Source: Podarcis melisellensis
Taxonomy: Eukaryota
DNA length: 64,000 nt
Assembly (NCBI GenBank): GCA_964234715.1
Contig: OZ174275.1
Direction: 5' to 3' (one strand)
The notes beneath the pieces are model-generated. The model worked only from the letters and a program-made list of their open reading frames with translations, was not told the DNA's origin and ran no database searches. The position numbers and the translations under genes are program-made. Below are positions 1-18,000 of the stretch, piece by piece. Every line of letters begins with the position of its first letter. Within the stretch, counting starts at the first letter, position 1.

Positions 1-3000
1 CTAAAGGTACAACAGCAATTCAGTGAAAGTGATAATGAATTAGCAAATTTCAAGGCATTTAAATGTGCCATAATAGCTCATTGTCATAAATTTTGGGGTG
101 TTGTGTGCCAACGTCAATAACTGTTTATTTAGTTTGTCTGTTTCTATGTGTTTCACAATTTTTTTAATTTCCTGCCACAAACTAATATCTTTAAAGTGCC
201 TGTGATACGAAAGAAAGCCATTTCGGAGGAACAAGTAACAGTTCAAGTATCTAGGAAAGAAGCTACGCACTATGAAGGTACATAATCTAATTAAGTCTTC
301 TAACTTGTCAATGCTTTATGTTACAGAGCCCAAGCCCAGGTTGTCACGTATACTAAAGGTGTTTATGGCCATTTGATCGGCCATTCACACTCCATTCACA
401 TTAATGATTGGATAGACTTTAAATAAATTCATTTTCAAATGCAGCAATAGACACACATGGGGGATTGTTTCAAGGTTTAGATATTATTTAGGCTGCCTTT
501 CATGTGTCTCAGATGTAGCCCAATAAAAACCATTCTCATAAAGCATTAAGGGAGAAAAATGAAAACTTGGGTGGAAAAGAAAATAGCATAAGATCCAATT
601 AATGATAGTTCAGTAGCAATGAAAAACTTTTTTCAGAACTTAACTGAAGAGTGGAATAACTAGAAACCAGAAAGGTGGAACACTTAGATTTTAATTAGAT
701 TAGACGAACTGGTTTCAGTGGGACCAAACTTTATAACTAGTGAGGCTAACCATAAAAGCATTACTAGTGCTCAGTTTGGGGGATGAGCCTTAACTTGCCC
801 TGGTAGACATGACCCATGAGAGCAGAAAAATAATCAGAGCCCAGGCGGGATAAAAAGGAGTTCCAGCAAAAAATGTTTAGCGACTTATGGAGTGCAGAAG
901 GGGCATATTTCAGAACCTTTCACTCCTCCACCCCCTTTGCTCTTAACAACAGCCACTTTACTTTATATGTGATTGTAGCAAACCTAGATTTAAGCCAATA
1001 ATTGTGCTGCACTCCTATCTGGTTTCAGCCTGAGCATCTCTAATTAGCAGAGCAAAAGGTTAGAATTAGTTAACCTTGAAGAAGGCCTGCTTCTGTGACT
1101 AAATGGAAAGTATAAGTTTATTCCACAATAAATACGGCTGGGCTCTCTGTTTGTTGGTCATTGTCTTTGGTTATGTCTTTTTTGTCCTATGCTTTTTACA
1201 AGTATGATTTTGCATGTCTCAAAGAAAACTAATATCTTTAAGATACAGAAACATATGAGGAAATGCTTCTAGAAGAAATGGAAGAACGGTATCCTGCCGC
1301 CATTCCTAGGAAACGTGAGGTTGCACCTCCCAAAGGTATATTCTTTCTTCGAGGAAAACGTAAAGCTACCAAAGTCACAAAAGTGACATGTTTTCATTAT
1401 TTCGCTCTTGTTCAGTTTGATGCTACTATTTGCATTTTGTGGTTTAAAAATTCTTACAAGGGAATTGATTTTATTTAAAGTGTCTGAGGTGCCCAGAAAA
1501 GGAGGGGCAGAAGAGAAGATATCCATTGCAAAGCATGAAAAAACAGAATTAGTTTCTGTACATAAAAAAGCAGAACTTACTGAAGTATCTCAGATAACGC
1601 AGCCTCAAGCACCAGAAAGGAAGACAGCTGCTCGTAAATCCACAAAACCAGAATCTATTGCTGTATCAAAGCCAGCAGAGCCTGAGCTGCCAAAACAGAA
1701 GCCACTTCTTGCCAAACCCAGGAAACCACAACCCGTTGTGGAGCCTGAAGTGCAAGAAGAGGAGATAGATATTGCTGAACCTGAGGAACCCATACCTGTT
1801 GCAGTTTATGAGGCAGTCGAACCTCATGTGCCAGAAAAGAAGAAAGTCGTTGCTAAACCTAAAAAACCAGAGCCTGTTGTGATGCTTAAAACAGTAGAGT
1901 CAAAACAGGAGATCGCTGTTGCCAAACCCAGAAAACCAGAACCTCTTGTGGAGCTTGAAACAGAAGAGCCTGGGGTGCCAGAAAAGAAGCTAATCATTGC
2001 TAAACCTAAAAAAACAAAACCTGGTGTGGTTCCTAAAACAACAGAGCCTCCAGTGCAAGAAGACCAGGTGGCTGTCTCCAAACCTAGGAAACCAGAACCT
2101 GCTGGGTTTCCTCAAACAGTAGAGCCTGAAATGGAAGAAGAGGAGATAGATATTGCTGAACCTGAGGAAGCAAAACCTGTTGTAGTTCTTGAGACAGTAG
2201 AACCTCATGTACCCCAAAAGAAGGCTGTTGCTAAACCTAAAAAACCAGAACCTATTATGGTGTCTAAAATAGTGGAGCCTCCAGTGCCAAAACAGAAGAT
2301 AGCTGTCACTGAACCCAGAAAACCAGGACCTGTTGTGGAGCCTGAAACAGCAGAGCCTGAAGTGCTGGAAGAGCAGGTAGTTGTCTCCAAACCCAGAAAA
2401 CCAGAATCCATTGTCATGGCTCAGATGGTACAGTCTGAAGTGGAAGAAGAGGAGGTAGATATTGCTGAACTCAAGAAACCAAAACCCACTTCAGTTCTTG
2501 AGGCAGTTGAACTTCATGTGCCAGAAAAGAAAGCAGCTGTTGCTAAACCTAAAAAAACAGAGCCTCTGGTGCCTGAGCCTCCTGCACCAAAACAGAAGAT
2601 AGCTGTCACCAAACCCAGAAAACCACAACCTGCTTTGGTGCCTGACATAGAAGGGCCTGAAGAGGAAGAAAAGAAGGCAACCATTGCTAAACCTAAGAAA
2701 ACAGAGCTTGGTGTGGCTCCTAAAACAGCAGAGCCTTACATGCCAGAAGACAAGATGGCTGTTGCCAAACCCAGAAAACAGGAATTCATTGTCATGTCTC
2801 AGATGGCAGAGCCTGAGCTGGAAGAAGAGATAGATATTGTGGAACCTGAGAAACCGAAACCTATTGCTGCTCTTGAGTCAGCAGAACCTCGTGTGCCAGA
2901 AAAGGAGGTAGCCGCTGCTAAATCTAAAAAACCAGAACTTATTGCAGTGCCTAAAACAGTAACGCTTCCAGCGGCAAAACAGAAGATGGCTGTCACCAAA

Positions 3001-6000
3001 CCCAAAGAACCAGAAGTTGCCATGGTGCTTGAAACAGCAAAGCCTGAAGTGGAAGAAGAAAAGAGAGCAAAATCCGGGGAGCCAGAACCTACAGTGGTGC
3101 CTGAAACAGTTTGGTGGCAAGAGCCAGAGGAAAAGGCAGCTGTTTCCAAACCCAGAAAACCAGAGCCTGCTGTTGTGCTTGAAGCAGCAGAGGCTCAAAT
3201 ACCAGAAGAGACTGTGATGGTTGCTAAGCCTAAAAAACAAGACCCTTATGCTGTGCCTGCAACAGAGCCTCCACCATTAAAAGGTAGACGTCATTCCCAA
3301 AGGGAAAAGACACTCTTGGCTTAAGAAATGTTTGTCTTGTTTGTGGGGAAAAAATCTTCTTTGTTTCATGTTAGTTTATAAATTTTGTACAGGCAACTTT
3401 TCTTGTCATACGTAAATGTGAATGTGCCTAATTAATGTCAATGTTTGGTGTCAAGTCTTTATGGTCTTGCTGGTATTTATCTTTATTGTGGCTTCTTCAG
3501 TTTGTATAATTAACACAATCTAATATCTTTATTGAAGTATCTGGTTTATCCAAGAAACCTGTTCTAGAAAAGTGCTGACAAAAAGCAAAAAAAACAGGAG
3601 CTCTGCTGGGTAAGAAAGAAAGTAAAAAAAGAACTTATCTCTTCTTGTTTCCTGATAATCTTGTGTCCCAAAAAGTTCCGATGCTGATTTTTGCAGAAAT
3701 AGGAATGTCATTTGCAGCTGTATTCTTACCTTGAGGCATAGGCATCCTTCCCTTTATAAACAAATACGACGCAATACATCATAAAACATGAGGTCAGGTC
3801 CCTGGATGAAAGGGGAAATGCTAATTATGATAACAATTAATAATAATAAACATACCCAAACCACTGTCAGGAAGGTAACAGCTGTGGGAGTAATCTTACA
3901 AAACAGATATATCAGCAGGTATTTTGAAATCTTTCAAATGTTCACTTGAGTTCAACCGTTTCCATCAGCCCATAAAAGATAACTACTTATATATATGAAT
4001 GAAGGACCAGGATAGGGGGGAATTTTTATCCTAGTGCCTTCTCTTCAGTCACTTGAACGATTTGTTCAGATTTGCCACCTGGACAGCTAATATTCAGCAA
4101 CAATTGACGTTGTGGTGCTTGTTCATACGCCAACTATAGATGTTTTGAGAAAAGGTCTATGTCTATATAATGTAAAGGGCAGCCTCCTGCTTTCAATTGA
4201 ATACCCACCCGTGTGATTTTAATGTCAATATTGTCCATGTCATTCCATGTCCGTGTGTCATGTTCTGTCTGTTGGGAATAAATCTGTTTCACTTCTTCAT
4301 GCCGTGTTATAAACCATTTTCAGTTCTTCAAAGTAAAATGTACTAATATCTTTAAAGTTCCCGAGATGCCCAAGAAGGCTGTGCCAGAAGAGAAAATACC
4401 TGTTGCAGTGCCTAAAAAACCAGCTCCTCCACCTGCTAAAGGTATATACCTCAGTCTTGGTGACATTCATTCTTACCAAAAGAAAAAGAAATGGGTTATG
4501 GGTTCACTTTCCCCCCAGCCCCATTTATAATTCTGCATTCTTTTCTTCTTCCTCGTCTTCTAAAAACCAACTTCATTTCTTAATTGGACACGTTCAAATA
4601 GGTTTTGGTTACAATTCAAAGAGTTGTGGATACAAAACCCCATCAATTTCAATGGAACTTACTTGCCCCCTGAACTGTGACTGCTTAATATTGACCACTA
4701 ACCTTCCTGATATTCCTCTAAAGGCACCTCTTTATTCCTGACACTTTTGCCTGCATTTTAACAAACTGAAACGTAACAGAAAATGATGCTATTTCTTTTC
4801 AAGTGCCTGAGGTACCCACAAAAGTTGTCCCGGAAAAGAAGGTGCCAGCTGCTGTTCCAGAAGCACCTCCAGCTAAAGGTAACATCCCAATTGACAGAAA
4901 GCAGCAGTGGGTTAGGGCTGGTCCAGGAGGATAGGCATTGGCCTGGTTTGCATGACATGGTAAGAAGAAACCTCAGCTGCAGCTCATGGTTAGTGAGTAG
5001 ACCACTTAACAGTGAGTCTGGGCTCCGGCAATACACTAAACCAGGCCTCCTCAACCTCAGCCCTCCAGATGTTTTGAGACTAGAATTCCCATCATCCCTG
5101 ACCACTGGTCCTGCTAGCCAGGGATCATGGGAGTTGTAGGCCAAAAGCATCTGGAGGGCCGAGGTTGAGGAAGCCTGCACTAAACTAAACTTTGATTGAG
5201 GTCAGCACAGTGTAATACTAAAAAAGACTATGGAGGAGCAAAATGGTTGCAAGCTGGTGATTGAAAGCCTGCACTTTTGCACAATTCTGGTAAGCCATAG
5301 CTTAGCTTACTGTGTCACATGAACCAGGCCAGTGTATATCTTTTTTTCTTACTTTTTTATACTACACATTATCATCGCTGAATGCCATGTGTTCTTCACT
5401 TTAGTAGACGATATCAAGTGTGGTATTTGGATACCAAAGGTGGCAGAAATGTTCTCCTTTAAGCTAATACTATTTGTTTGCTTGTTTGTAGATTCACAGT
5501 CAGACTTTAATATCAATATTTCTAGAGTAGGTCACCATAAAAATAAGAAAGCAATTTTAAAAGATCAAACAGCAGATAAGACTAGCATCACTAAGACAGT
5601 CTCCTCAACAGTGAACAGGCAGGTGAAATAAATAGGGTGGCATCAAAAGATCTTATGAGAATATATAATTATGGTTTCCGTCAAATTTCAAATTATAAAT
5701 TATACATTAAAGATAAAGGATATAAATTGAATATTGTTATTTAAATATCCCCATCTACTATAACTTTATTTCAAATTATTATATTTCCTTTTTAAATTAT
5801 TATTGAAATTAATTTATTGTAGTGTCGGTTGTTAAATTGCTAACTGCTTAATTATTTACTGTTCTGTTACTGGTTTGTCAATGCTGTGCTTTCTTCCTTA
5901 CTATTACTTTCTATTTAAATTATATATAAAAAAATATTTTTTTAAAAAAAAATGTTAACGATGGTGTTAATAACAACGATGGCAAAAAAGACGGCATGCT

Positions 6001-9000: not shown

Positions 9001-12000
9001 TGATGTGTTTGTTGTACTTTGTGTTCCTTGTTTTCTCTGATGATGTACAACATGTCTTCTTCATGTGAGATATCCAGAAGGCTTTCAGCCTATTTTAAAA
9101 AATAATTTGTTTATTAGCTTACTCTTAGCTCTTGGTGAGTGATCTGCCATCCAGGCTGTTGACCTATTTACTTTCAGCAACCCTGGCAACAGAAATTTAC
9201 TGAAAAATAATCTGTGTAGTTCATATACTTAAGGAAAATTCAAATGAGAATGTACCAGGAAGCATCTGCATCCCTTACTAATCCTATGCTCATCTTCCAT
9301 TGACTGTGATAATTTAACAGAAGGACAAAGAAATAGGATGGCAATTAAACTGCCACACTTTACAAAGATCTGCATAACTTCTCAGGAAAGGGAAGGAGGA
9401 CTCATTTAACAAAAACAAAAACAAACTAGGGATATAGCATGAAAATAAAGAAAATATACTGTCTGCGTTTGTGGAGAGGAGGAGAAAATTGTATTTGAAT
9501 ATCGTTTTTGTCACTGTTTTCAAGTTTTGTGTTTATTGTTTTCAAATCTTTTATATCTTTGACAATCACACATTCAAAACTAATATCTTTTAAGTGCCTG
9601 AAGTGCCCAAGAAAATTGTCCCAGAAGAAAAAGTACCAAAGAAACCAGAACCTCCCCCTGCTAAAGGTATTTGTCAATTCTGAAATAATCATAGTCAAAA
9701 TATTTGGGTGCAATGCTGCTTATATAGAATCAGTGGTAAAACTCCCATGGGTTTTAAATGGAGCAGGATTCCAGTTTTTGCCTTGCTCCCATGCCTTCAG
9801 TTCCTTCATTTATTACTTCCCATTGAAATGTGGCATTTATTAGACACAATCCAGGTGAAGCTAAGCACTTTTAGGGCTACAGTCCTATGTACACATCTGA
9901 GAAAAAAGTTCATTGTACACCATGGGACTTCCTTCTGACTATACATGAGCAGGAAGTTTATGCATGTCCCATTAATTTCAATGGAGGGATTAAGCACAGT
10001 GCTTAAAACTTTAACTGGATTATGCCCAAAGTAACATGTAATCCAAATGCGTATCAAACAGATACATTTTTATAGTCTTTTTGATCACATTGAGTAAGAA
10101 AAGCCAGATGTTTATGAGCTGCCAGTGACATTTAGGTTGCATTGAGCTTGGTGGGTCGCAAAGAAGTTGGTGGTATGCCTAGGCAATGCATGTCAACAAT
10201 AAATCAAAATACAAAATATCAACAGGCCAAAGAAGACAGGTAAACTTCCAGTTGTGTTGTGTCATCTTCCAAGAAGGTGGCAAAATTCTTGTCAAAGGCA
10301 TAAACTTATTCATTATCCATTCAAGTCATTGGATGTTAATGTGAACATCCTATTAATATGTATTTGGATTTTACCATCAGTTTGAGTATATCATTGGGTT
10401 TTGAGAATTAAGGAGAACACCTTAGGAATATATGATGGCCCAGAAGAAAATATTTATGAAATATTTATCAGTTCATATATAGTCATCAGTAATCAAGAAA
10501 TATAACCAAGACTAAAACCACTCCAATCTTTTTTACAGATTTACTGTTTATGAGGAGTGGGGATGTAATACTATCTTGTCACAGTGGGATTGTAAATGCA
10601 TTTTCTTTGTTTGTATTTGATACCCTTGTTTTCTATCTGTATTGTCTGAATTAGTGATTGTTTTAATGAAAGAGAAAAGCGAGAGGCTGGGATAGATCTT
10701 CAATGTTATGTAGTAGATAATGTTGTATATCGTCATGTTTTGTGTCTCACGGTTTCTTGATCTCATAATCTTGCACGTTGCATTTAGAATTAATAATAGT
10801 AAAACAATCAAATATCTTTAAAGTGCCAGAGGTGCCCAAGAAACCTGTGCCTGAAGAGAAGGTCCCTACGCTCAAAAAGAAAGAACCACCAACACCTAAA
10901 GGTATATGTTATATCTGATCAAATCTTGAAGCGAAAAACATCCTTTTCTTATTCTCTTGATCATTGATCATCTTTGGATATCCTTATGAGTCTATGTCAT
11001 GCATTCTTTTGAGTAGCTTTCTGTGCCTAGCAATTCCATCCTCATAGTTCTACTGGTGGTACAAGTGGGTTGTACTTCATGGTAGTTTGTTGTTACAAGA
11101 TTCTGGGCACAAAAGCATGCATGCCCCCTCACCTTACATCTCGAGCTTTGACATTTTCCCATCTTTTACATTTCATTGTGCTTTCAAAATTCAATAGTAA
11201 GCATTAACTAATATCTTTAAAGTGCCAGAAGTGCCCAAGAAGGCTGTCGTCGAAGAGAAAGAACCAACTCCCGTGCTTAAAAAGCCTGTTCTTAAGGAAC
11301 CAGAACCTCCTCCTGTTAAAGGTACATTTCAGCATTAATGCAGTTATAAAGAATGTGGTTTTGATGCAGGTGTTTAAAGCAGATGTCTGGGAGATTCTTG
11401 TTCTGTCTGTGCTCCGTTGCTTAAAATTTCTTTTGTAAACAATACTGTTGGTTCAGTCCAGTGTGTGAGAGAAAAAGTGCTTAGCTGTGCTGAACTTCAT
11501 CACGACTGCTTTCTCTGTGTCCTAGTATGCAAACACACAATTGCTGATTTTGTTATAATTGTGCATTATGTTTCAGTCTTCTTCATATTAGCTATATATC
11601 TTTTGCCCCTTCTTAAAAGTAAAACTAATCTCTTTTAAGCACCCAAAGTACTTCGGAAAACTGTGCCAGTTTAAAAAGTAACTCTTGTTTTACCTAAAGA
11701 ACCAGAACGCTTTGCTGTGTCTGAAGAAGAGACCATTAGTGTTTATGAAGAAGAAAAAGTCACTGTTGAATATGAAGAAGAAGTCGTCACTGTTGTTGCC
11801 GAAGAACATGAACCTGCTATTGTGCCTAAGAAACCCAAGCCTACCATTGTCCCTAAGAAACCAGAAGCTGCAGCCGTGCCGAAACCACCAAAGGCTGTAC
11901 TTAAGAAACCAGAACGCCCACCTGCTAAAGAGACCTTGGAATATGAAGAAGAACGAGAGGTGCAAACGATTGTTGGGTACAGAGAGCGAACACATGTTTC

Positions 12001-15000
12001 TGTCTACCAGGACATAGAGGCTATAGCTGCACTTGAAGAACCCGAGAGTGCTTCGGCTTTTGAGATCACAGAGCCTGAGCAATACTTTATTGAGGAATCA
12101 GAGGAGATTATTTCACTTGAAGGACCCGAAGCTGTCCCAGAAGAACCAGAAGCCGTTGCTGCTCCAGAAGAAACGAAACCTGCTATTGTGCCAAAAAAGC
12201 CGAAGCCTACTGCTGTAGCTAAAAAGCCAGAACCTGCGGCTGCACCCAAGAAACCAGAACCTATTGCAGTGCCTAAAAAGCCGAAACTTGCTCCTGTACC
12301 TAAAAAACCAGAGCCTCAGAAGCCAGAACCCTTGTTTAAAAAGCCAGAACGCCCACCACCAGCTAAAGAGATTGAAGAGCACGAAGAGGAACGAGAGGTG
12401 CAGACTTTTATTGGAAAGAGAGAGCGACAACATGTTTCCGTCCACCTAGACATAGAGGCCATAACTCCTTTTGAGGAACCTGAGAGCGCTGCAGCTTATG
12501 AGATGGAAGAGGAAGAACAATACGTCATTGAGGGGTCCGAGGACATCGTTTCCCTTACAGGACCTGAGCCTGTTGCTGTCCCTGAGGAACCCCAAGTCGT
12601 TGCTGCTCCTGAGGAACCTAAGCCTGCTCTTGTGCCCAAAAAACCCAAGCCTGTTGCTGCGCCTAAGAAACCTGAACCCGAAGCTCCTCCCAAGAAACTG
12701 GAACACGTCGTGGTGACGAAAAAGCCGAAACCTGCTGCTGTGCCTAAAAAACCAGAGCTTGCAGCACCGCCCAAGAAGCCCGAACCCTTGTTCAAAAAAC
12801 CAGAACGCCCACCACCAGCTAAAGAGCCCGAGGAGCATGAAGAGGAACGAGAGGTGCAGACTTTTATTGGAAAGAGAGAGCGGCAACATGTTTCTGTCCA
12901 CCAAGACATAGAGGCCATAACTGCTTTTGGGGAACCTGAGAGCGCTGCAGCTTATGAGTTGGAAGAGGAAGAACAATACGTCATTGAGGGGTCTGAGGAC
13001 ATTCTTGCACTTGAAGCACCTAGAGCTGCTCCTGAGGAACCAGAAGTCATTGCTGCTCCTGGAGAGCCTACGGAAGTACCTAAGAAACCAGCAAAAGGTA
13101 TATGGCATAATCTTTTCCAGTACAAAGAGTATGTCTTCCTTAAAGCAGAATGTTGACAAGCGTTGCTTTGCCAACTTTCTGCAGAGCAATTCAAAAAACT
13201 GCTCTTGTAAACAAAGTTGTTGTGTGTATACATTGGTGTGTGGGTGTGTGAAAGAGAGAAAGGTTCTTTCTGATTCTGCAAAGCAATTTGCTTAGGCCTG
13301 CAAGAATCTGAAATTTCCATTATTAATTGACGTGAAAGTAAAAAAAAAACTTAAATGTATGAATGGAAACAGATTCAGGAAGAATTATTCATTTGAAGCT
13401 GAATGAAGGTGATGTCTGATGTGCCTGTGGGTTGATGGATCTATTTTTTCCCTGTCTTTTAACAAACCAACTAATATCTTTAAAGTGCCTGAGGTATCCA
13501 AGAAAGCTGTCCCAGAAAAGAAAGTACCAGTTCCTGTGGCTAAAAAAGTCAAACCGCCACCAGCTAAAGGTATATGTCCACACCTAAAGAAGAAAATTTC
13601 TTTGTTCTTCTTAAAATACTCTCTTCTTCTGTACTGTCTCTCCTATAGTTTTTGCTTGACTGAAATAACCTAGTGTTCGTTTTATGATACAAACTCTGTA
13701 TGTATAATACGAAGTCTATATGTCTCTAGATACGATGTACGTCTATGTATCTGTCTGTAGCATTAATCTTGCTTTTGATAATTCTTCGTTCCTCTTCTTA
13801 ACATCTTGGTACCTCTTACTTCAATAATTCTCAAAGTAAAAATAGAAATATTATCTTTAAAGTGCCTGAAGAGCCCAAGAAAGTTGTTCCCGAAAAGAAA
13901 AAACCAGCTGCTGCACTTAAAAAACCAGAAGCTCCTCCCACAAAAGGTACTTTTATCATTCACAGAGAAAATCATTATCTTGCTTGCTGCGTTTGGTTCA
14001 GCTGTTGGATTTGTAAATCGTACTAATGTGTATAAATGACAGGCTGAGCCTAACTTGGGTGGGGATGGGGGTGAGGGAGTGTTTGTGTCCAAACACAATA
14101 GGTAACTTCAATACCTTCAGCAGCTCCGCTTTTGCTTTTAATGCCTTGTTTGTTTTACCTACATGAAAGTAAAACTAATTAAAATTTCTTGAAGTCCCTG
14201 AAGTTCCTAAGAAAGTGCCAGAAGACGAGGCCCCTCTTGCTGTTCCTAAAAAGCCGGAACCTCTGCCTGCAGAAGGTAGCTCTCCCTATTAATCACGACG
14301 TCATTCTTATCCAGACTGCTATGTCCGCTTTGTTTGGTCTTACATTTTATGTGGTCCTGTATGTATATGTAAGGCGGGGTGGTGGTGGTAGAGGACTCTG
14401 TCTGTTCTTTATGATGTCCATCTGTTGAAAGTTAACAGTCTGCCTTTCTACCTTATTACGGATTTAAAGCTACATCCTTTAATGGCTGCAAGCAATTCTA
14501 ACGGTGGAAAACCCACGCTTAGAATCTTGATTTGCTGTAAAAGACTGAAGCTAATACTTCAATTATCTCCTTTTGCACAAATTGGCTTTGGCCTTTTTGC
14601 CATCTTTATGCTGTGTGGTGTTGCACTCCTTCTGGCTGCAATTTTAGTACTGGCCTCATTTATAGGGGCCTTAGGGAGAAATCAGAAGGAGGGCTCTTTC
14701 CTTTTTTGTCCAGCAGCAGCAAATCTACCTGGGGCTTTGGCACAAATTTTTATTGATCCCATGGTCCCAGAGGCACATTTGACCAATGATGTGCTGCAGT
14801 GCTTCAATTCAACAATCTGGATTGAGCCCTCAGGAGTTGGCAGGGGATTCTTAGATTTCACACCAGAACTGTAGCTGTAGTCTTTATGTTGAGGGATTTG
14901 AATTGTGAACATTTGAATGAAACGCAGCTGCATCAAATAGTTGCTTTGTACAAAATTGGACCTTATCAGGCCATCAAAGCTGCCCAACTTCTTTGAAGGG

Positions 15001-15047: not shown

Positions 15048-18000
15048 ATACACACATATATATAAATCTGGGAATCTGATGGCAACAATCCTTCTTTAAA
15101 ATATGTGTGAATATAATCTGGACATACACTTTTCAAAAGCCCCATCAAATGCAGAATATATAGGCCTTTGTGCAGAGGGCTGCAGAGGGTTCCCAGAGGC
15201 CTGATGCAATTTCTGTTTACGAAAGCATCCATTTAAGGGCCTTCCATCCATTTATGTAAAAAAATACACTGTGACACTGGTGTGTTTGTCTGTGAATGTG
15301 TATGTTGTAATAATGTCCCCGCTATTTTGTGCAACATGTCTCCAATTCTTCTTGCCATTTGATATTTTAAATGGCAATCTTATCTTCGTTGTCGATATTC
15401 TTTAAAGAGCCAGAAGTTACAGAGGAAATTGAACCGGAAGAACCAGCACCTGTTCCTATTCCAGAAACAGAGGAGATAATTCCAGATGAAGGTATATACT
15501 AAAGTGTGAATGAAATATACCAATTTCTTTTGTACCATCTCCATCTTGCTGAGTAAGAATTAGGTGTGTTTGTTCCGTGATGTGTACACTCCAGTATGTT
15601 TTGTTTTGTTATTTTTGTGTGTGTGTTTGTATGCGTGTATTTCCTACGTTGTATTGCTTTCTGTAACTGTGTTGGTGATTCCCATTATCTTTGACCATGT
15701 AAACACCTTTCCCTCTTAATTGACTTGGAAGTTTACTAATGACTTTTTCAAAAACTTTCTTGAACCTATGGGCCATCAGATATTTTGAGCTGAGTTGTTT
15801 ATTTTGGCACTTGCATTACTGGGAGTTTTACGAATGGAGTCTATAAAAGCAGTTTATTTCCTTTGTTACATTAGATGGTTTACATCTGAGGTTTATATAG
15901 TATAATTACATTAGCACTGAATCTACCGCAATATCATTTAAAGAACCAGAACCGGAGAAGAAGATACCTGAAAAACCCAAACCCCGTGTACCTTTCCCAC
16001 CAAAAGAGGAGGTTAAGGAGGAAAAGGTTCAGCTTAAAGGTATCAGCAGCAACCCCAACAGTATTTAACAACTTTTACTAAGCCCCAGTTTTATAACTAA
16101 TGCCTATTGACACATAATAATGTTCTTTGAAAGTGTGGACTTTAGGCTGCCATCCTATTCCCACTCACCTGGGAGTAAGCCTGATTAAACTTACTTTTGA
16201 GTAGGTGTGTATAGGATTGCGCTGTTAATATATTAATGTAAGTCTAACTTAATGTTGTCTGAATGGTTTTCAGTCTAATGTCCCTACTCACTGATGGTTT
16301 TCATTTTTTTATTGTTTCTAAATTTGTAATTAGGGTTTGCAATCCAGACAGTTAATTTTACCTGTGCTCTAAGGCCTTATGCATGGTGTAGAAAACCTCC
16401 CATTACATTCAATCAGTCACTGTGCTTTGCAGATAGAGAGCTTCCTTCAGATACCATCTTACCAAGAGCTTTGTTCCACATAATGTAGGAATCAGGCCTC
16501 AAGTGTCTTGGCACCTACCCATTGGAATTCTGTCCTATTAAACATTAGACAAGTGATGTCTCTGTTGCCTTTTTGGTACCTACTGAAGATCTTCCTCTTT
16601 CAACAAGCCTTTTAAATAGAGATCTTTCCCAGTCTGCATCTGTATTGGAATTGTATTGGGTGTTTTTAGATGAATTAATTGTTTTGTCTTTTGTGTGTTT
16701 GCTGCCCTGGGCTCCCTCAGGAGGAAGGAAAGGTTATAAATTTAACAAATGATGACGACGATGTCACCTCACAAACTGCTTTTGAAACTCTTCTGAGTTT
16801 CAAACACCAGTCAAAGTGTGGCATGTTTGTTTGCTGTCTGAGATTCAGAAGTCCAGAGTCCTACTGAGTGTGTGGAACTTGTTTTATAGTTCTTTGGATT
16901 GTATTTAGTTATTTGAAAATGCATGTGTCAAGCATGGATGTAATATAGCTAGCATTCAGAATTAAGGGTAGAGAAAATGGAACTCAAAGCATTATAGACA
17001 GGGAGGAAGATTTATTATTTCCTAATGAAAATCAGTATCAAAATAAACAACTATATGTAGCTTTTTTAAGGTTTAGAAAATATTACTCCACATCTCACAT
17101 TTTGCAATATTCTGACCTTATACAGCATAATGAAAAGATCAAACGTAGTTCAATATTTCAAAGTGTATCACCTAAGTAATATTTGGTCCTACAAGAATTG
17201 CATTTACTTTTGAAAAATCTGTTCTTTTCCCACCATCTCAAGACAGAGGGAAACAGATCCTCTTTCCAAAACAAGATTCCACCTCACCACCACACACACT
17301 TTTATAATAATAGTTTCACACAAAATTCACAGGGAAAAACTTGATTATAGGGTCTTTATAATAAGTCAAGAAGGAACATTGTGGCTACACAATCTATTAA
17401 AATTTCAACAGAAGTGGATGTCCTCTCTGCTAAGTATATATAGATCCAGTGAAAGCAAATTTTTGTATGATCAGATATGCTAGAACCAAAGTAAGCAATG
17501 TAAAGTCTTCAGGCTGCATGTATCCTAATAAGGCCCTTCCCCAGTCCAAGCAGCCACTATGTGGTAAGTTGCTCACAGACCCTTGTGTCTTGTTCTCGTC
17601 TTAAAGAGCACTAGATTGTAGTTTTTAGTATATTTCACAAAGTAGTATATTTTTCATTCCGTTTCCATGTGTGACTTCCTGTGGTTGTTTTATGTTCAAC
17701 TTGATTCACTTTTTTATCTATTTTCTTTTTACTGAAGCATACTTTCATTTCGGATGGAGTCTTCTGTGGCTTCTTCATCATGGCCTTACTTTCATGACTA
17801 ACAATATTATACAGTGGCACCTCAGTTTTCGATCTTCTCAGAAGCCAAACATTTTGGTTTTCAACCGCCGAAAACCTTGAAGTAAATGCTTCCGTTTTTG
17901 TATGTGCCTCAGAAGTCAAATGGATTCCACTGAGTCCCCCCCCCCCCAAGTTTCTCCATTGATTTTTCAGGCTGCCCTTTGTGCCTCAGTTTCCGATTGT

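Follow-up and report, generated by a model that had tools for sequence, protein, structure and literature searches.

How is a productive titin message made across an exon whose family-typical acceptor leads, within 12 codons, into an in-frame stop? This question is raised by a very large exon of the lizard Podarcis melisellensis, and we addressed it in a window of 64,000 nucleotides, the whole stretch of DNA analysed here. The explanation that we rank first, and to which we would give a little less than an even chance, is that the TAA is real and derived in this lineage and that productive splicing has shifted to 11700, the first 60 nt of the exon now being intron. Several other readings must be weighed against it, and every one of them, like the shift itself, requires some rare event.

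The window covers the C-terminal, distal part of the titin PEVK spring on the + strand, with Ig and Fn3 exons downstream. We located about 20 PEVK exons within 1.4–19.7 kb. Exons neighbouring the large one match the PPAK motif of Pfam (PF02818) at 20–32 bits, three of the four tested exceeding the 21-bit cut-off, and the I-set and fn3 matches in downstream ORFs share their strand with these PPAK-motif exons. The small PEVK exons are 69–99 nt long and encode VPEVPKK...PPAK. They usually start at ...actaatatctttaaAG/TNCCNGARGT (VPEVPKK) and end in ...AAAG/gt (PPAK), where the slash marks the splice junction, and all 18 that could be delimited are symmetric (phase 1-1), with the first codon completed by the last G of the preceding exon.

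Many PEVK introns in the window terminate in (A)CTAAT-N5-7-TTAAAG, for example before the acceptors at 4357, 9594, 11222, 11639 and 13485. The branch-like CTAAT lies about 10–16 nt before these acceptors, in many of them just ~11 nt from the AG, and position -3 is A almost throughout. Weak acceptors of this type, with unusually close branch motifs, would fit heavy alternative splicing. The CTAAT tail that precedes the big exon is also found in the orthologue described below. Another very large PEVK open frame of about 1.9 kb lies at 1480–3290 of the window and is entered at ...ttatttaaAG/TGTCTGAGG; it contains many PRKPEP/PKKPEP and E-rich units, and a Pfam search with it gave no match. A literature search found no paper on PEVK exon structure in reptiles.

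The exon in question spans 11640–13097 (1,458 nt; Table 1). Its ancestral acceptor, ...actaatctcttttaAG/CA at 11639/11640, has 10 pyrimidines in 16 positions and a CTAAT 11 nt upstream, and its donor is AAAAG/GTATAT, with the exon ending at 13097 in phase 1 and the GT at 13098–99. The phase-1 reading from 11640 is (G)CA CCC AAA GTA CTT CGG AAA ACT GTG CCA GTT TAA, which makes the stop codon 12, preceded by APKVLRKTVPV and followed by 474 open codons; all the other 485 codons are open up to the donor. The initial annotation of this DNA had already described the canonical acceptor at 11639, the peptide APKVLRKTVPV followed by TAA at 11672–11674, and an open remainder of ~470 codons, and both the sequence and its translation agree with that description. 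Both 11640–13097 and 11700–13097 (1,398 nt) are multiples of three in phase 1. An uninterrupted frame from acceptor to donor fails from 11640 and holds only from 11679 or 11700. We rejected a micro-exon at 11640–11677 using the donor AAA/GTAACT, which at 38 nt is not a multiple of three, does not avoid the stop and leaves a 21-nt intron, as well as a donor at 11648 (GTACTT), with which the exon would be 8 nt long.

Table 1. Features at the 5' end and in the body of the large PEVK exon (window coordinates; the slash marks a splice junction).
Feature	Position	Strand	Observation
Upstream PEVK exon (VPEVPKKAVVEEKEPTPVLKKPVLKEPEPPPVK)	11223..11321	+	Ends ...TTAAAG/gt, phase 1; nearest possible donor partner
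Intron with family-typical tail aaaactaatctcttttaAG	11322..11639	+	Branch-like CTAAT, its A 11 nt before the AG
Ancestral first 20 codons, interrupted by the stop	11640..11699	+	Orthologue APEVLPKAVPVKKVPVAAPH, without a stop
In-frame TAA	11672..11674	+	AAA in the orthologue; GAA, GAG or AAA in paralogues
First in-phase AG after the stop (gtttaaaaAG/TAACTC)	11677..11678	+	8/16 pyrimidines; like the weak 'tttaaAG' PEVK acceptors
Candidate new 3' splice site	11679..11699	+	Relaxed branch motif gUAAc, tract CTCTTGTTTTACCT, AG at 11698-99
Open exon body, E-rich and PKKPEP-type PEVK	11700..13097	+	1,398 nt (466 codons); starts (G)AA CCA GAA CGC = EPERF
Tandem super-repeat within the exon	11906..13059	+	456 nt (152 aa), 2.6 copies

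We searched for orthologues by word matching, with the complete ORF, residues 1–150 of it or an N-terminal piece of 149 aa as the query, and also ran an exhaustive HMMER search. These yielded one orthologue, from a distant relative: the protein P0001 and its cluster mate P0008 (399 of 401 residues identical). They come from the genomic Logan contigs L001 and L002, each 1,330 nt long, with 2 nt differing between them; the contig occurs in the records of just two samples. The protein searches, word-based and HMMER, found no contig of the same species, and the remaining HMMER matches (P0003 and P0005–P0007) were discarded as unrelated low-complexity proteins. The orthologous exon (27–1205 of the contig, 1,179 nt) is fully open and reads APEVLPKAVPVKKVPVAAPHEPERF. 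It starts at ttaaaataaaactaatatcttttaag/CACCTGAAGTACTTCC..., and both its acceptor tail (aaaactaatatcttttaag) and its unusual exon start match those of the window. Across the exon the two sequences have an aligned identity of 44%, with a dN of 0.45 and a dS of about 1.1, values that carry the uncertainty of aligning repeats. Over 11640–11699 the DNA identity is 75%, the same amino acid is found in 10 of the 18 sense codons compared, and the local dN/dS is ~1, based on only 14 changes.

At the stop itself the window has GTT TAA AAA GTA and the orthologue GTG AAA AAA GTT. Exon 11223–11321 of the window, which aligns to 11640–11710, has E/K codons at this position. The initial annotation had expected GAA here; GAA is indeed among the paralogue codons, but the expectation cannot be narrowed to it, the orthologue having AAA and the paralogues E or K. 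An E or K codon is one transversion away from TAA. Because the orthologue shares the acceptor tail and the open frame, and because PEVK exons of the window align to the segment, 11640–11699 is formerly coding sequence. The TAA in turn appears to be a derived single-base nonsense change, since the orthologue, with the same tail and an open frame, has AAA in its place.

Downstream of the exon, the first ~20 bases of the following intron are recognisably conserved between the window (13098–13120, gtatatggcataat) and the orthologue (1206–1230 of L001, gtagttggcacaat). Such conservation despite a coding identity of 44% may mark a splicing element.

If the true base at 11672 were A or G, the exon would be an ordinary one starting at 11640, and the stop a product of assembly or base calling. 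The TAA is the sole stop among the ~20 PEVK exons of the window, it sits at the boundary between a T-run and an A-run (GTTTAAAAAG), and a single base change turns it into a codon of the orthologue or of the paralogues, all of which fit an error. Homopolymer errors are typically indels, however, whereas the frame here is intact, and a frame-preserving substitution is atypical for long-read assemblies. Every other examined exon is clean, and an error would also leave unexplained why the stop coincides with the strong downstream acceptor described below. We consider an error improbable.

The part of the exon beyond 11700 behaves as coding sequence. None of 20,000 shuffles of it was open, and the alternative frames carry 9 and 43 stops. 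P, E, V and K make up 58.5% of the exon's residues (70% with A), with E at 21.5% and P at 16.8%, and PKKPEP-type repeats and E-rich blocks are visible, while a Pfam search of the big exon itself gave no PPAK match. In each copy of the super-repeat, PKKPEP-type repeats come after an E-rich block (EEREVQTFIGKRERQHVSVHQDIEAI...). Comparing the copies with one another gives dN/dS values of 0.17, 0.24 and 0.43 at a dS of 0.29–0.90; over most of the period since their origin, the protein sequence has therefore been maintained. The body thus remains a coding exon whose copies are under purifying selection. The orthologous exon aligns with about two super-repeat units, and the copy number may therefore differ between lineages.

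These data also weigh on the proposal that the whole 1.46-kb exon is optional, or a recent pseudo-exon, and enters essential isoforms rarely or never, which would make the stop harmless. Skipping would be frame-neutral, as the big exon and the 18 small PEVK exons are all phase 1-1. PEVK exons are heavily alternatively spliced, and the acceptors of the window are weak, with an A at -3 in nearly all of them. Both the turnover of PEVK exons (PMC6469411) and the tolerance of truncations in exons of low inclusion (PMC11641062) count for this proposal. It sits poorly with 466 open codons and repeats at a dN/dS of 0.17–0.43, and with an orthologous exon that stays open in a distant relative. A long-dead exon would hold more lesions, so the loss would have to be very recent. 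Altogether, we judge an optional or lost exon to be rather unlikely.

We gauged the quality of downstream acceptors by their pyrimidine counts (positions -18 to -3) and by motif distances. In-phase AGs are frequent in this exon, because a Lys codon followed by Glu, Val or Ala gives A/G at the boundary. With one at 77 of the 485 codon boundaries, finding an in-phase AG means little in itself and is not beyond chance. The AG at 11698–99, which has the same phase as 11639 and lies 60 nt (20 codons) downstream of it, is preceded by 12 pyrimidines in 16 positions, the joint highest count among the 77. The two big PEVK exons of the window hold 184 other in-phase AGs, of which just 2 do as well, and the chance of finding such a site at most 9 codons from the stop is ~0.017. 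The authentic PEVK acceptors of the window have 8–13 pyrimidines in 16, so that 11699 stands above most of them. The A of its branch-like gUAAc motif, at 11681, is 18 nt upstream of the AG.

At 11699 the junction reads TAAAG/AACCAGAAC and shares 14 nt without a mismatch with the acceptor of the exon at 15944–16039; the exon at 15408 likewise begins with EPE. Nowhere in the 5' end of the big exon is conservation higher than in the peptide just past the 11699 junction, PERF.V.EE (PERFAVSEE against PERFIVPEE in the orthologue). AG 11699 is, on these sequence features, a credible in-phase candidate acceptor of unusual quality. The initial annotation had proposed it as an in-phase rescue acceptor with a pyrimidine tract; its phase and its tract were borne out, and to that description we add a second in-phase AG, immediately behind the stop at 11677–78.

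In the orthologue, CATG stands where the window has AAAG, and no AG matches that at 11698–99. Only one of the two lineages compared thus has this AG, and the comparison involves one distant orthologue at a dS of about 1.1. The orthologue's tract before this position already has 11 pyrimidines in 16, so the place appears to have been predisposed and not visibly rebuilt. The site at 11699 may be a lucky pre-existing cryptic acceptor, not an evolved rescue, a point that weighs against the shift.

In the acceptor shift that we rank first, a nonsense change would have arisen in this lizard's lineage inside the former first 20 codons of a large PEVK/E-rich exon. Productive titin mRNA would now enter the exon at an in-phase AG past the stop, most likely at 11699/11700, which would remove 60 nt (20 codons), keep the frame and let the exon begin with EPERF. 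The intron would in effect now run on through 11640–11699, an event that can be called partial intronization or a shift of the 3' splice site. Transcripts still spliced at 11639/11640 would have a premature stop far 5' of hundreds of exon junctions and would presumably undergo decay. We infer from the genome that T at 11672 is a correct and fixed base and that splicing uses 11699. The shift is ranked first because only a shift or a rescue explains why the stop is co-located with the best cryptic in-phase acceptor.

Against the shift, the 60-nt segment lacks clear decay, its conservation being on a par with that of the remaining exon. The old acceptor likewise retains its family-typical CTAAT and tract, and AG 11639 is the first AG past the CTAAT. 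With the segment undecayed and the old acceptor intact, any shift would have to be recent, and the same two observations also fit a carried allele. Under that alternative, a titin-truncating allele segregates in the population, probably present in one copy in this animal, and the assembly picked its haplotype; the normal allele would have a sense codon and use the acceptor at 11639/11640, and no rescue would be needed. A segment conserved against the orthologue like the rest of the exon is what a very recent mutation would leave, and so is an upstream acceptor that is intact and family-typical. Tolerance of TTN truncations depends on exon usage. Humans are known to carry truncating variants in PEVK or metatranscript-only exons without dominant disease (PMC11641062). 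A carried allele nonetheless leaves unexplained the best cryptic in-phase acceptor 8 codons past the stop (~0.017 by chance). The frequency of carriers of titin-truncating alleles is also low per individual, which counts against it. We regard a carried allele as plausible though unlikely; it is moreover compatible with the shift, as such an allele could itself be rescued by 11699.

The two acceptors might also both be used, 11640 giving a stop-containing, NMD-targeted message and 11700 a productive one, with the choice between them tuning titin output or spring composition between muscles. The features of an alternative 3' splice-site pair are present, in that both AGs are in one phase and each has a pyrimidine tract and a branch-like motif. 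This corresponds to the switch suggested in the initial annotation, of whose interpretation the derived stop in the coding-homologous segment 11640–11699 and the credible acceptor at 11699 stand, whereas nothing specific points to a regulated switch. The other two readings that the annotation offered, a segregating truncating allele and a base-call error, are those weighed above. A regulated switch would be expected to show a conserved two-acceptor arrangement, and in the orthologue both elements are lacking, the stop as well as the distal AG (CATG). A one-way evolutionary acceptor shift is therefore the simpler account, and we hold regulated use of both sites to be very improbable.

UCUU occurs in the tracts before both candidate acceptors, at 11630–11633 and 11683–11686, which may be trivial in pyrimidine tracts. 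RBM20, a repressor of titin splicing, reportedly has UCUU as its core motif, and the UCUU-containing tracts could perhaps influence the choice of acceptor.

A correction in the RNA, with the ribosome reading through the stop or A-to-I editing turning UAA into UGG, was considered solely because the 60-nt segment looks conserved; nothing specific favours it. The UAA is followed by an A, which makes for strong termination and argues against readthrough. Editing would need both adenosines to be converted, and there is no long duplex at the stop: folding of 161 nt gives an MFE of -32 kcal/mol (z = -1.8) and one 6-bp local stem. We consider a correction of either kind extremely remote.

What the locus means depends on which of these readings holds. 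If the stop is real and fixed, the exon would be a clean natural example of exon-edge remodelling, in which an early nonsense codon is neutralised by a cryptic in-phase acceptor of a sort that PEVK codon usage (Lys-Glu, Lys-Val) supplies abundantly. It would then help to explain how the PEVK spring can evolve rapidly without breaking titin, and would caution annotators against assuming that splicing always uses the family-typical acceptor. A carried allele would add a species other than human to the examples of tolerated titin truncation, while use of both acceptors would make the segment a recently born poison segment within the largest known gene. An error would be relevant to assembly polishing only. 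No outcome would overturn current understanding.

One close comparison is with the mammalian PEVK region, where PEVK exons (PPAK and poly-E motifs) turn over rapidly and 'internal splice sites' inside the exons hamper exon calling (PMC6469411). The window resembles it in its small phase 1-1 PPAK exons amid E-rich sequence, with I-set and fn3 exons downstream, and the 77 in-phase AGs of the lizard exon agree with such internal splice sites. The lizard exon differs in being 1.4–1.46 kb long, far above the typical size, in its 152-aa super-repeat and in having no PPAK match. A case of a stop combined with an acceptor shift is absent from that study (PMC6469411). Human TTN truncations in low-inclusion or metatranscript-only exons (PMC11641062) are similar in that a nonsense codon lies in the PEVK region and its effect depends on inclusion in the RNA. 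They are, however, rare alleles accompanied by transcript data, whereas the lizard case was read from genome sequence, and the lizard stop has a frame-preserving alternative acceptor right behind it.

In the intronization idea attributed to Catania and Lynch, exon sequence with a premature stop reportedly becomes intron. The lizard exon shares with partial intronization a formerly coding stretch at the exon edge that holds a stop and, close by, an AG whose phase and pyrimidine tract would let the stop be spliced out with the frame kept; it differs in that the old acceptor is intact and the splicing shift a candidate. The poison segments of SR-protein genes, in which alternative 3' splice sites are coupled to NMD, are usually strongly conserved. 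The likeness to them lies in two acceptors of the same phase, the proximal one including the stop and the distal one skipping it, and the difference in a distal AG that is absent from the sole orthologue and a stop that is lineage-specific. Set beside these systems, the locus is ordinary titin PEVK with an unusually large, lineage-expanded E-rich exon, and the event is of an ordinary kind in a fast-evolving region.
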